Assembly (NCBI RefSeq): GCF_006345805.1
Contig: NC_043019.1
Coordinates: forward strand, 27,713,360 to 27,777,359
Source: Octopus sinensis
Lineage: Eukaryota
Direction of reading: 5' to 3'
Length of the DNA stretch: 64,000 nt
Every line of letters starts with the position of its first letter. Position 1 is the first letter of the stretch. Positions 27,501-60,500 of the stretch are shown piece by piece. The position numbers and the translations under genes are program-made. A model generated the notes under the pieces. The model did not search any database. It was given only the letters and a program-made list of their open reading frames with translations, and was not told where the DNA came from.

Positions 27501-30500
27501 TGCTGTCTGAGTTGGTAAGGTTTCTACAGCTGAATCTCCTTCCTAACCACTTTACAGAGTGTAGTGGGTGCTTTTTACATGGCGCCAGCAGCAGTGAGGT
27601 CATCAAACAACTAAAAGACAAGATCTCTTGACTGAGGTTGAGGGTAATATTGAGGTAGGTGGCTTTGTGCCAGGTGATTATTAGATTGCTAAAGAATAAG
27701 GATACTGCAAGATGATAGGATAATAGAAGGAGAAATGAAAGAGAAAATTCCAAAGAGTACAAAATTCTGTAACACTATCTTTGTCCATTTTCTAAAATGG
27801 ACAAAGATATTGCTACAGAACTTATGTATGAGAATTAAGAAGCTGCTCTCAATACACAATGCACACCAACCTAAAAGTAATATCAACAGGCTCTTCCTAC
27901 ATTAAAAGGAAGGAGGCAGAAGACTGTTAAATGTAGAAGACACTGTTGGAAATATTATATTCAGTTTGAAAAATTATGTTGTATGTAGTGAAGAAGGAAT
28001 ACTATGTCCGAAAATTTACTGAAACAGTAGGAGAATTCAAGAAAACAGATTGAATCAATATTCAGTGTTATGTAAAGGTATTCAGTTACTGAGGTTTAAA
28101 TTGTAATAGATGATGTAGGTTTGTTTATTTGTTAGGAATAAGGGAAAGCAAACAGACAGATATAAATCATGCAAAAATTACTTACCGTCAACTGTTATTA
28201 TTGCAATGATTGCCAAAAGTGACTTGGATTCTGTTGAATTCAGTATACTAATGATTATGGTCAAATTGATATCTATGATTGGTGTGCCATTGTCTGTCAC
28301 AGGAATGATAAATATAATTTCAAATTGCGTATCGATACTGCCGTTTCTGAAATAGTATAGAATGATAGTGAGAGGGAAAGAAAGGGGAGTATAAATAAAC
28401 ATATATATACTGAACTACAAAAGAAATGTCGCATTGTAAAAGATTATTAGTTTCGCACACGATATTGAGATTATATGGATTTTATCACATTTCAAGGTAA
28501 TTTGACATCAGGAAGATGTCACTGAACCACAACACCACTCTCTTTTAAAAAACACAAAGATTGCATGTAAGGTTTCAACTTACTCACTTTTAATGACCAT
28601 AGTAATGCTTGCAAATGCATGTTTATGAAAAGCATGATGTCCATGCAAAATGTTGACTTATTGGGTATAAAAGGCACCCAAATTTACCAGCCTGTTATTC
28701 GTTTCCCAAATGCAGCAAGCATGCCAAGACTGACATGAAATCAGAGAGAGCAAGCCATCAGACACCACCATGCTGGTCAATGTCCATGGATCATTGCTAA
28801 TGACTTGAACTGCAGTATTTGGACAACTGAGCGGCTGAGGGAATGATACAATGCCACAAACAGCATGGATGATCATCCACACAGTGGCTGACTGAGAATT
28901 ACAATGGCATGTCAAGATTGCCACCTGTGCCAACAGCACTTGCAGGACTGATTCTGGAGGGCAACAGAATCAGCTAGGCAGACCATAGGGACTCACCACA
29001 GGCCTATTTGTGCAGAGACAGTTTGCTGCTAGCCGAGATCTTTCAATCTGTCTTGTCTATGTCTGACTTGGGGCCCCATCTGCACAGATCATCATCAACT
29101 GGCACATCTGCAGTGAGCTCAAACACACCAGAACTGGGATATCAGCAGTGGACTGTAGTCTTCTCTGACAGAAGTTGATATTGCATTTCTGTGACAGATA
29201 GCAGAGCTAGGGTTTGGAGAAGAAGGAGTGAACATCATGCCAATTGCAATCAACCAGAAACTTGGACAGGTTGTCTTCCAAGACATCAGCCAAGGCTGGG
29301 ACAATGGAGTAACTGCTGCTCGCTACATCAACCTAGTGTTGAGGCCTCAAATTGTGCCACACTTTACCCGTCATCGGAATCATGTGTCCCAACATGACAA
29401 CACCTGTGCCCATACTGCACTTCCTTCAGTCCTGCACTTCCCCTACCCAGCCTTCTTTTATAGACAGTTACTCTATATCCAATCGACTACTCCTAATGTT
29501 TTCTTTCCTCCATGAGGAAAAGAGATACATATGACAATATTTATGACCATACCTAGCCATGAGCTGTCAACTCACTCTTACCCTTCATTCTAAACAGACC
29601 ACAGTCCTCTAGTCTTAGATTTAGTAGTTGATAAAGAGACGAATGAATTAGAAATGAACAACATTCCTTTACAAGCTATGACCCCAGTGGGCTTCATGCC
29701 AATCTTGGAAGTGTAGTCTATTCTGAGCTACAAGATACAAGCAACAGGAATTTCTTCCATTTTCTTGTTCTGTTAAAGTATTTGAGAAAAATTATATTAA
29801 TGTATCCCACTAGTTAAAATTCTGTTTATTTATTTTATTTGTGCAGCTGATGATGGCATTGCATTTAAATTGATGTAATGATTGCATTGTTCAATTAAAT
29901 GGAACTGTTTTAAATGGTCATGCTGCATCACTACTTGATACCTGTTGCTTATTTTTATTTTTATTTTATACATACATACATACATACATACATACATACA
30001 TACATACATACATATATATATATATACACACACACACTTAAGTTGTATGTATGTCCATAGACATATGCACACACACACACATATTTTGATATATATATAT
30101 ATATATATATATATATATAATATATATATATATATATATATATAATATATATATATATATATATATATATATATACATATATACATGTATAAATAAACAC
30201 ATATATAAATTTTTTAAAAAACAGTAGGTATGAAAATAGTCACATAAGATATAAGGTCATGAATTATGCAGGAAGGGGTTAGTCAATTTCATCAACCCCC
30301 TGTATTTGACTGGTTGTTCATTTCATCCCTCCTAAAATGCTTGAAAGTCAACCTCAGTGAGATCTGAACTCAAAACATAAAGTGGTCATAACTAAATACT
30401 GCAAATCCTTTGCATGTCAGCCACACCCTAGCACTAGCAGTACTCGCAATCCAATAATAATGCTGTTGGTTGTGGTAGTGGTGGCGGCGGCGAAGGCGGT

Positions 30501-57500: not shown

Positions 57501-60500
57501 TACTATCTATCTATACTTGAATAATCCTTTCTACTATAGGCACAAAGCCTGAAACGTTGAGAGAGGGGGATAGTGAATCACACTGACCATAGTACTCAGC
57601 TGGTACTTATTTTATTGATCCCAAGGGGGTGAAAAACAAAGTCAACCTTAAGAGAATTTGAACTCAGAACATAATAAATGCTGCAAAGTGTTTTGTCTGA
57701 CATGCTAAGAATTATGCCACTTCACAACTTTTCTGTTCCTGAATATGCTAACCAGACTATGCAATGTTTCGAGTGACATAGACTCTTCAAGAGCAGAAGA
57801 CCATCCCTGGAAGACGATGAGAAATCTGAAAGACCTGCTATGTGCATCACCCCCTGAAATGTGGTATTGTGCATTGAGAATTTATCACCCAGGTCCAGAC
57901 CATCAATCAAGAGTTAAGTGCCACACCCAAGCGGTTGAGGGAACCTGTGGAAGAGGTAGACCCAGGAAGACCTGGGATGAAGTGGTGAAGCACGACCTTC
58001 GAACATTAGGCCTCACTGAGGCAATGACTAGTGACCGAGATTTTTGGAAATATGCTGTGCTTGAGAAAACCTGGCAAGCCAAATAAGACCATAACCTCGT
58101 GGCTTATGCCAGGGATGTAACCAGCCCACCTTTCCTTCATTGGACACTAAACTCTGCTTGCAAAGACCTGTTGAGGCAAGTGAAATCGAAATCAAATTCA
58201 ATGATTGGCATCTGTACTAGTGGAGCGCTAAGAGAACCATCTGAGCATGATCGTTGCCAGAGCAGCTAACTTGCTTCCATACTGGTGGCATGTAAAAAGC
58301 ACCATTCAAGCGTGATTGTTGCCAGCGTCGCCTTACTGGCACTTGTGCCAGTGGCACGTAAAAAAAATTCAAGCGAGGTTGTTGTCAGTGCCACTGGACT
58401 GGCTCTTGTGCAGATGGCATGTAAAAAACACCATTTGAGCATGGCCATTGCCAGTACCACCTGACTGGCACTCACTACACTCTCAGAGTGGTTGGCATTA
58501 GGAAGGGCATCCAGCTGTAGAAACTCTGCCAGATCAAGATAGGAGCCTGGTGTAGCCATCTGGTTCGCCATTCCTCAGTCAAATCGTCCAACCCATGCTA
58601 GCATGGAAAGCAGATGTTAAATGATGATGATGATTTTGAAGTATTTGAGGGAGAACATTTGGTAAAAGCAACTGGATCTGTGGGGTATGAAGAATTGGAT
58701 TCTTCATAATGACAATGCACTCTGTCACCAAGCTCTCCTCACTCATGAGTTTCTCTTCATAAATAACATGGCATTGCTTCTACACCTGCCCTATTCACCA
58801 GATTTAGCACCTGCAGATTTCCATCTCTTCCCCCCAAGAGGAAAATGCTGTCCAAAAGTCACCATTTTAACGCCATAGTTGAAATTCAAAGCGAATCGCA
58901 GAAGGTCCTCAACTTGGTTACTGAAAATGACTTCCAGGCTAGATTCCAAAAGTGACAAGAACATTGAGACTGATGTATTGTTGTGACTTTTTTGAAGGAT
59001 CTGATGTTAAAATTTGATAAAGAAGTTTTTATTACACATAACTCGTCCTGAAACTTTTTGATACCACCCCACATACTTTTGATAATATTGAACAACTGAT
59101 ACAATTAAGCTAACTGGATTTCAACAAAATTAAAAACTCACCAGTCAAACACACACATACACACACACAAGCATATATTAGTATGAGAATAATTCAAACC
59201 TTTTCTTCAAATTCTTTGGCCTTTTGCTGTGCTTCAGGTGAAGACATATCTGCTAGGGCTGGCACATATGTATCATTTAATTTTACAGAAGATTCCACTA
59301 TCACTTCTGAAAAACAGAACAAAAATACATGCATTATATCATATGCCTTTGGCAACATCTTTTAATCATCAAGTGACGAAGTGCATCCCTTGACCAAGTT
59401 TGCATACATGAGACTGATAACATCATAAGACTTGGAAGGTAGTACCTTGAGAAACATTCCTTGTCTGATAACCTTAAATACATGCCCAAAGAAGTAGCAC
59501 AACTCTACCACAATGTATCATTAGATGAAAGGATGAGCCTATATGAGCAGAAGACTATGCATGAATATGTTACTAGAAAGCTCCATGATGATAGTAACAT
59601 TCATCATCAAAGCAGTCTATCATGTCTTTGTCTTCTTGCATATGTCACGCCGACTCCAGGCAGTGCAAGCATCAGAGAATGCATTCAAAATGTGTTGCAT
59701 ATCAATCTCTGTGTGTGCTACTAGATCACAATCATCTGCATACAAAAGGTCTCTTATGATAGAGGTAAATACATTTGTTTTTGCAGCAATATTACCTCTA
59801 TCATAAGAGACCTTTTGTATGTAGATGATTGTGATCTAGTAGCGCACACAGAGATAGATATGTAACACATTTTGAATGCATTCTCTGATGCTTGCACTGC
59901 CTTAGGATTGACAGTCTGTCTCAAGAAAACTGTTGTCATGTACCAACCTGCCCCTGGTAAGCAGTATAGTGAACCAAATATCTACGTGTATGGTAAACGA
60001 CTTGGTGTAGTTGATCAGTTTGTCTACCTGGAAAGCACTGTTAATAGATATAGCAATTTGGATAATAAAATTCCATACAGAATTAGGAAAGCAAGTGATG
60101 TTTTTGGAAGGCTAGAAAGGTACCTCTGGAGTCAACGAGACATATGCAGGAAGACAAAGATAAAGGAGTACAAGGCGTATGTGCTCTCTTCTCTTATTTA
60201 TGCCTGCGAGATGTGGGTCACATATCAATACTACCATAAACAACTGGAACGTTCCCATCAAATGTGTCTCAGACGGATCTATGGCATTAAGTGGGAGGAC
60301 CACATCAGTGATCTTGAAATACTCGAAGGCTCTCGGTGTGGAAGTATAGAAGCTCTTGTGTTAAAGCAAAGACTCAGATGGAGTGGTCATCTGGTCAGGA
60401 TGAAGGATTCAAGGATGCTAAAACAACTCTTTTATGGAGAGTTAGCTAAAGGAGAACGACCTCCACATAAACCAAAAAAGAGGCATAAGGACTTGCTGAA

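Follow-up and report, generated by a model that had tools for sequence, protein, structure and literature searches.

An unusually fast-evolving, duplicated SEA domain in a predicted membrane glycoprotein gene of octopus

Do two copies of an SEA domain within one octopus gene differ because selection drove them apart, or because little held them in place? The question is raised by a stretch of 64,000 nucleotides (nt) of AT-rich, microsatellite-rich animal DNA from Octopus sinensis (NCBI RefSeq assembly GCF_006345805.1, contig NC_043019.1, positions 27,713,360 to 27,777,359), which is referred to here as the window. An earlier note on this DNA had claimed two paralogous three-exon SEA domains between 28186 and 59306 that differ almost only by amino-acid-changing substitutions, and had proposed diversifying selection on them. 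The two domains were borne out by AG/GT exon boundaries, Pfam and fold models, and the limits proved exact, 59306 being the first base of exon c of unit 1 (U1) and 28186 the last base of exon a of unit 2 (U2). In this study, we observed a ratio of non-synonymous to synonymous substitution rates (dN/dS, omega) of approximately 1 between the copies, which exceeds the values for other exons of the gene (0.36 and 0.53) two- to threefold and does not rise above neutrality. The unusually fast protein evolution of the SEA domain is real, and the selection invoked for it is not demonstrated. A weakly constrained, rapidly evolving duplicated domain is the explanation that we consider probable; positive selection is a possible but less likely cause of this omega.

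A masked self-comparison of the window revealed two collinear repeat units at approximately 45.9-59.3 kb (U1) and 27.4-35.5 kb (U2), with block identities from 74% to 99.5%. Each unit contains three minus-strand exons (c, b and a) with AG/GT boundaries, which encode one SEA domain of 113-115 amino acids (aa). Each triplet opens with two codon bases and closes with one and thus forms a phase-1/phase-1 cassette. A third SEA unit was not found in the window by tblastn of the exon peptides. The six exons are:

59200..59306, minus strand: SEA U1 exon c, 107 nt, encoding strand beta1 and helix 1; 100% identical to the O. vulgaris reference
55705..55772, minus strand: SEA U1 exon b, 68 nt, end of helix 1 and beta2; AG/GT-bounded, paralogue alignment
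46799..46968, minus strand: SEA U1 exon a, 170 nt, Gly-Ser turn, beta3, long loop, helix 2 and beta4; AG/GT-bounded, model
35348..35457, minus strand: SEA U2 exon c, 110 nt; AG/GT-bounded, Pfam SEA
33186..33253, minus strand: SEA U2 exon b, 68 nt; AG/GT-bounded, paralogue alignment
28186..28346, minus strand: SEA U2 exon a, 161 nt; AG/GT-bounded, model

Both units scored well above the Pfam gathering cut-off for SEA (PF01390; 49.6 bits for U1 and 50.2 bits for U2 against 26.4, E = 3-5e-13). AlphaFold2 models from a 30-sequence alignment reached a pLDDT of 82.7 and a pTM of 0.75 for U1, and 91.8 and 0.82 for U2; they share the same topology, and the predicted structures of both units show the beta-alpha-beta-beta-alpha-beta sandwich of the SEA fold. 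A Foldseek search with the U1 model only gave seven PDB matches at E <= 0.001, all seven of which are SEA domains (TMPRSS6, MUC16 and a mouse transmembrane protease; TM-score 0.65-0.74). The Gly-Ser pair is the site of SEA autoproteolysis. It lies at the beta2-beta3 turn and forms the only invariant columns, being present in 30/30 aligned domains, both units included. In the autoproteolytic subclass the consensus is G|S-V/I-V/I-V, with a hydrophobic strand following the turn. This strand is canonical-like in U1 (G-S-L-I-I) and atypical in U2 (G-S-I-D-T), an acidic residue at GS+2 occurring in 7 of 182 SEA domains (4%). The SEA domains may cleave themselves. A loss of autoproteolysis in U2 was considered and not adopted, since G-S-I-D/E occurs in other SEA domains.

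How did the two copies come to differ? For exon b, the hand counts of the earlier note were reproduced exactly: 48 of 68 bases are identical and 20 differ, which changes 14 of 23 residues, and a single codon shows synonymous change only. In the last 28 codons of exon a, where eight differences had been reported, all of them non-synonymous, we found 19, with four codons changed synonymously only (GTG/GTT, GCC/GCA, TTA/TTG and ATT/ATC); the Nei-Gojobori method gave 6.7 synonymous and 12.3 non-synonymous differences (Sd and Nd) and omega 0.49 for these codons. Over the whole domain, synonymous changes make up 19.8 of 89 nucleotide differences (22%), the same proportion as synonymous sites among all sites (72/333, 22%), and the description as almost only amino-acid-changing does not hold. 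Exon c had been said to carry more synonymous change, and its omega of approximately 0.9 agrees with this. The Nei-Gojobori estimates are:

Exon c, 35 codons: dN 0.203, dS 0.224, omega 0.90
Exon b, 22 codons: dN 0.437, dS 0.151, omega 2.9
Exon a, 53 codons: dN 0.374, dS 0.540, omega 0.69
All exons, 111 codons: dN 0.327, dS 0.341, omega 0.96

Goldman-Yang maximum likelihood (ML) estimation over the whole domain gave omega 1.01 (F1x4) and 1.12 (F3x4), neither of which differed from 1 in likelihood-ratio tests (p = 0.96 and 0.72), and a 95% profile interval of approximately 0.55-2.0. For exon b alone ML omega was 3.3, and omega = 1 was not rejected (p = 0.11-0.12). A branch model rejected neither omega_U2 = 1 nor omega_U1 = omega_U2 (p = 0.22-0.30), and is degenerate with three taxa and a saturated Argonauta branch. 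Thus, in dN/dS between the two copies, which the earlier note had itself named as the test, diversifying selection is not demonstrated (omega 0.96-1.12, not different from 1). This is a cautionary case, in which hand counts on a 23-codon exon suggested selection that the full-domain analysis does not support. The within-gene controls are the exon encoding the N-terminus and transmembrane (TM) segment (omega 0.36, O. vulgaris versus O. bimaculoides) and a MAM exon (omega 0.53, window versus a relative assembled in Logan).

The comparative material for codon-based tests comprised an outgroup locus from Argonauta, which is saturated, a single O. bimaculoides exon and a conspecific assembly. Relatives were obtained by an exhaustive HMMER profile search and source look-up; a word-indexed protein search with U1 alone returned no match, though a protein identical over 89 residues (P0006) was in the collection. 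P0006 (Octopus vulgaris CAI9739542.1) comprises a cytoplasmic tail and a signal anchor, followed by SEA1 and a tail rich in Pro, Thr and Ser (PTS). The other relatives are an O. bimaculoides fragment (P0018, A0A0L8GSK0), two Argonauta hians models (P0013 and P0123) and a cuttlefish protein (P0025). Aligned with O. vulgaris chromosome OX597836.1, the window shows 95-99% identity and a mismatch rate of 0.95%, and it thus represents a further haplotype of the O. vulgaris/sinensis type. The duplication postdates the split from Argonauta, because the Argonauta locus contains a single SEA triplet. It predates the split of O. vulgaris and O. bimaculoides, because exon c and its flanks group O. bimaculoides with U1 (34 sites versus 10 and 5; distances 0.065 versus 0.158-0.177). 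With Argonauta and Sepia as outgroups, 15 derived residues were assigned to U2 and 4 to U1 (p = 0.02), and with Argonauta alone 14 and 5 (p = 0.06); of 28 other SEA domains, moreover, 22 are nearer to U1 than to U2. On these comparisons the divergence is asymmetric, U2 being the more derived copy.

The O. bimaculoides locus (LOC106875178) contains 18.6 kb of N and an inverted sub-contig; U1 exon c is the only SEA exon recovered from it, along with some intron. The sub-contig with SEA1 exon c (L004, 45756-47861) is placed upstream of the N-terminal coding exon (69341-69613), in opposite orientation and amid N gaps, which is probably a scaffolding error. In the fragment P0018, an exon-a-like sequence precedes similar PTS micro-exons. 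This fragment shares only 54% identity with U1 exon a and 46% with U2 exon a, whereas nearby orthologous DNA is at approximately 93.5%; it represents either extreme divergence or a non-orthologous unit.

The introns between the SEA exons are a mosaic. The intron next to exon b had been described as more similar between the units than the exon itself; this was weakly confirmed, the flanks being 78% identical and the exon 71% ungapped or 77% with the same gapped aligner, and all three exons together 76% versus 81% for the flanks (Fisher p = 0.07). Farther from this background stand three tracts of 0.5-0.9 kb that are 98-100% identical (34924-34125, 31225-30726 and 27965-27466) and have sharp edges against neighbours of 70-85% identity. 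The corresponding features are:

34005..34950, no strand: intron tract, 97-98% identical to 56795-57745; putative gene-conversion tract
30726..31225, no strand: core of an intron block near-identical to approximately 54.1-54.6 kb; here U1 clusters with U2, and O. bimaculoides falls outside
27449..28047, no strand: putative gene-conversion tract in the intron immediately 3' of exon a of each unit; 99.5% identity to 45893-46491

In a 570-nt intron block, U1 and U2 of the window group together (31 sites versus 10 and 6), with a distance of 0.028 between them versus 0.065-0.072 to O. bimaculoides. Parts of the introns were therefore homogenised after the O. vulgaris/O. bimaculoides split. Paralogues are closest in some tracts and orthologues in others, as is expected of gene conversion, and the near-identical tracts recur in the independent O. 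vulgaris assembly. Further copies of these tracts were not found in approximately 190 kb of sampled octopod sequence (L002, L003 and L004), and an origin of the 97-99.5% tracts as young repeats was rejected on this ground. Intragenic gene conversion appears to be the simplest explanation. Divergence amounts to 0.237 in exon columns, 0.149 in intron within 350 nt of an exon and 0.051 in intron farther away. The correlation of intron divergence with distance to the exon was not significant (Spearman), diverged intron being found also far from exons; therefore, we do not claim an exon-centred protection from conversion.

Which process could leave two SEA copies at omega near 1? Neutral decay, with one cassette (U2 being the likeliest) drifting as dead or unspliced pseudo-exons, would by itself give this value, and U2 is indeed the more derived copy with the atypical strand after Gly-Ser; furthermore, the O. 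vulgaris annotation has no gene over U2, and no public gene model includes it. However, none of the six SEA exons contains a stop codon, a frameshift or a lost splice site, and the two indels between U1 and U2, of 3 and 9 nt, keep the frame. If substitution had been neutral at the divergence seen, the probability would be 0.02-0.11 for an open frame and 0.02-0.09 for 12 intact splice-site bases. If only U2 decayed, the joint probability of its open frame and splice sites, which together with the phase are kept in all three of its exons, is 0.002-0.06, and lower with the in-frame indels; if decay is allowed in either copy, it is approximately 0.001. In addition, the structural model of U2 is more confident than that of U1, the Gly-Ser pair is retained, and U2 differs from the reference assembly by one synonymous and no non-synonymous substitution. 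Since all cassettes are of phase 1, U2 fits the reading frame, and the downstream PTS, LDLa and MAM exons are in frame only via compatible cassettes. Because open frames, splice-site bases and in-frame indels are retained, decay is unlikely, and we regard it as quite improbable; the outcome that the earlier note had set against its own proposal is thus disfavoured as well, by these features together with the confident SEA folds and an omega of approximately 1 against 0.36 and 0.53 elsewhere in the gene. An assembly error (collapsed or duplicated haplotigs) as the source of the duplicated structure or of the near-identical intron tracts is extremely improbable. Tracts of 99.5% identity beside 76% identity do look odd, and the O. 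bimaculoides assembly of the locus is visibly broken, but both units and their high-identity tracts also occur, in collinear order, in an independent O. vulgaris assembly at chromosome level, which is approximately 1% different from the window.

Adaptive divergence is the most likely of the rivals. Here U2, and perhaps SEA1 between species, would have been driven by positive or diversifying selection on exposed residues, and homogenising conversions at exons would have been purged. Several observations fit such a process and weigh against weak constraint. Changes per codon are over-dispersed (P = 0.006), and an omega of 1 across a maintained domain also fits a mix of constrained and positively selected sites. 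The exons are more diverged than alignable intron, that near the exons included (0.237 versus 0.149), and all three recent conversion tracts miss them. Between O. vulgaris and O. bimaculoides, U1 exon c has an omega of 1.28 (9 non-synonymous versus 2 synonymous differences) and approximately twice the divergence of its flanking intron. Against the inclusion of U2 in the mRNA stand the public gene models, of which that of O. vulgaris stops in a retained intron before U2 and those of O. bimaculoides before SEA1. Further points in favour of adaptation are the omega of 2.9-3.3 in exon b, the approximately threefold excess of derived residues in U2 with U1 nearer to most other SEA domains, the 54% identity of P0018 to U1 exon a (orthology putative), and the beta3 changes I64D and I68E, which in the predicted structure are in register with Arg66 and may lie on the solvent-facing side of the strand. 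The window differs from the reference at four U1 positions, all non-synonymous, and at the one synonymous U2 position, where approximately 3.3 differences per unit are expected, so that this comparison has no power. The grouping of paralogues by intron and of orthologues by exon recalls the primate red/green opsins, in which gene conversion acts between paralogues and 'peaks of divergence' mark the exons under selection (PMC3924837). However, the sample sizes behind these signals are tiny, and no test is significant: omega = 1 is rejected neither overall nor for exon b, and the same holds for omega_U2 = 1 and omega_U1 = omega_U2. Synonymous sites of the exons are as diverged as non-synonymous ones. 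Alignable intron is an ascertainment-biased and partly homogenised yardstick, and the dS of the N-terminal exon (0.20) also exceeds the intron value of approximately 0.06. About half of the alignable intron was recently converted, and the chance escape of three exons has P ~0.1; diverged intron also occurs far from exons, and the orthology of P0018 is unproven. We therefore hold adaptive divergence to be possible but doubtful. Its strongest form, in which selection against ongoing intragenic conversion keeps the SEA cassettes different and adaptive change recurs between paralogues and Octopus species, seems unlikely to us. If it were true, the domain would be an invertebrate juxtamembrane domain of the arms-race type at an epithelial, microbial or gamete interface.

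Weak constraint on a duplicated domain is the reading that we prefer. A three-exon phase-1/phase-1 SEA cassette was duplicated in tandem between the divergence of the Argonauta lineage and that of O. vulgaris from O. bimaculoides, and both copies are predicted to have stayed intact, spliceable and foldable SEA domains with the Gly-Ser turn. Purifying selection on this juxtamembrane, glycosylated spacer domain would be weak and would hold only the fold core, the Gly-Ser turn and some N-glycosylation sequons. After duplication, the constraint on the redundant copy was probably relaxed further; U2 has taken most of the derived amino acid changes. In the introns, stretches as diverged as the exons alternate with the 0.5-0.9 kb tracts homogenised after speciation, most simply by gene conversion.

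The cassettes appear to be part of one large minus-strand gene, the mid-portion of which lies in the window and which would encode a type II membrane glycoprotein with an N-terminal signal anchor. The deduced order is TM segment, linker, SEA1, four PTS micro-exons, SEA2, a mucin repeat of approximately 11 units of 18 aa, LDLa and MAM domains. The single-gene reading is favoured because the Argonauta protein P0123 (858 aa) joins TM, SEA, PTS, LDLa and MAM in one chain (Pfam); U2 would then be spliced into the mRNA. Besides the SEA exons, the following features were assigned:

63237..63251, minus strand: micro-exon of 15 nt for the linker (..APEP.., phase 1-1) between the TM-encoding exon (outside the window) and SEA1; AG/GT-bounded, corresponds to the APEPQ linker in P0006 of O. 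vulgaris
45557..45577, minus strand: PTS micro-exon 1, 21 nt, F-VTPGTT, phase 1-1; matches the P0006 tail
44167..44187, minus strand: PTS micro-exon 2, 21 nt, AAPPETT; encodes part of the P0006 tail
40971..40991, minus strand: PTS micro-exon 3, 21 nt, AAPPETT; shares a duplicated flanking intron with micro-exon 2
37017..37079, minus strand: PTS micro-exon 4, VTVPVTT, 21/42/63 nt; three in-phase alternative donors
25743..26594, minus strand: large mucin-like PTS exon, 852 nt, phase 1-1; holds the 54-nt tandem repeat at 25818-26407
21325..21486, minus strand: LDL-receptor class A exon; tblastn with Argonauta P0123, Pfam on P0123
14774..18972, minus strand: first MAM domain in three exons (18829-18972, 18388-18615 and 14774-14944); tblastn/Pfam via P0123
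8126..13597, minus strand: start of the second MAM domain (13508-13597) and a MAM C-terminal exon within the open reading frame (ORF) 8126-8617; tblastn and ORF evidence

The tail of P0006 is the product of the four 21-nt PTS micro-exons between the SEA units. The shortest form of micro-exon 4 spans 37079-37059, and alternative GT donors extend it to 37038 or 37017, adding 0, 7 or 14 residues. The four micro-exons, each encoding 7 aa in phase 1-1, sit in intron segments that are mutual duplicates with 68-86% identity (e.g., 40888-41439 versus 44083-44646). In the large PTS exon, the 54-nt repeat comprises 10.9 copies with 91% identity and encodes an 18-aa Ser/Thr-rich unit with one N-x-T sequon per copy; it is a classic mucin-type variable number tandem repeat, the copy number of which probably varies. 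A search with the LDLa and MAM ORFs gave one Logan genomic ORF as its sole match, on a contig (L001, SRR11869394) that holds only a MAM exon. Window positions 8126-9345 align to this contig, which is from a more distant octopod, with 88% identity in the MAM exon and 80-82% in both flanking introns; it shows that short-read assemblies of further species exist, which are a potential source of SEA exons.

Long ORFs were also observed in the introns (54940-55374 and 61235-61868 on the minus strand; 59866-60537, 60541-60957 and 42447-43211 on the plus strand), and such ORFs explain part of the 5-kb size difference between the units. Our impression is that they resemble remnants of mobile elements; eight long intronic ORFs had no Pfam match above threshold and are hence not assigned to particular transposons. 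A dispersed repeat of approximately 190 nt, with 72-80% identity and in both orientations, is found at 27400-27590 and at least eight other sites, e.g., 5104-5300, 16618-16800, 35773-35950, 38865-39055 and 58470-58634; one copy edges the 99.5% tract, and the repeat is possibly SINE-like.

For annotation, the analysis points to a large TM-SEA-PTS-SEA-mucin-LDLa-MAM gene that the public gene sets of O. vulgaris and O. bimaculoides contain only in fragments or in truncated form, with micro-exons of 15-21 nt that gene predictors missed. The O. vulgaris model CAI9739542.1 skips 25 SEA1 residues via a junction that lacks canonical splice sites, and its last residues (..GMYL*) come from a retained intron; the O. 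bimaculoides models (LOC106875178) end directly after the TM segment, and U2, the mucin exon, LDLa and MAM are without annotation in O. vulgaris. If the adaptive reading were true, the locus would be a compact cephalopod example of selection maintaining tandem-domain divergence under gene conversion and would flag a fast-evolving surface glycoprotein at epithelial or reproductive interfaces of octopus.

Among known systems, the intron mosaic resembles that of the primate red/green opsin genes (Teshima and Innan 2008, reviewed in PMC3924837), in which intron tracts of the copies are closer within than between species and the exon with its flanks groups by orthologue; the spacing of the SEA copies, approximately 18-24 kb, is likewise that of the opsin genes. 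Unlike the opsins, the octopus case involves exon cassettes inside a single gene and has no known functional substitution, and its exons may have escaped conversion either by selection or by chance. Downstream, the alternating LDLa and MAM modules resemble those of MAM and LDL-receptor class A domain-containing proteins (MALRD1-like). The MALRD1-like proteins are not known for an N-terminal signal anchor with SEA and mucin segments behind it. The N-terminal cytoplasmic tail and signal anchor, the juxtamembrane SEA domain and the subsequent LDLa and MAM domains are reminiscent of enteropeptidase (TMPRSS15) and matriptase-type proteases (TMPRSS6), and the U1 model has its best structural match in the SEA domain of TMPRSS6 (9nrc, TM-score 0.73) and also matches that of a mouse transmembrane protease (2e7v). 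Unlike these proteases, the octopus gene has two SEA domains that are separated and followed by mucin-like PTS segments, and no CUB, SRCR or protease domain was seen in the window, off the 3' end of which the gene runs, or in the 858-aa Argonauta model. Compared with the membrane-tethered mucins (MUC1, MUC3/12/13/17 and MUC16), sequence identity is 20-35%; the vertebrate proteins are of type I with SEA beside a C-terminal TM segment, whereas the octopus protein is predicted to be of type II, its ectodomain continuing into LDLa and MAM. With these mucins it shares Gly-Ser SEA domains within Ser/Thr/Pro-rich tandem repeats and the tandem duplication of SEA: the U1 model matches SEA5 of MUC16 (7sa9) with a TM-score of 0.74, and the top profile matches are vertebrate proteins with 5-14 SEA repeats, axolotl mucin-1 included.

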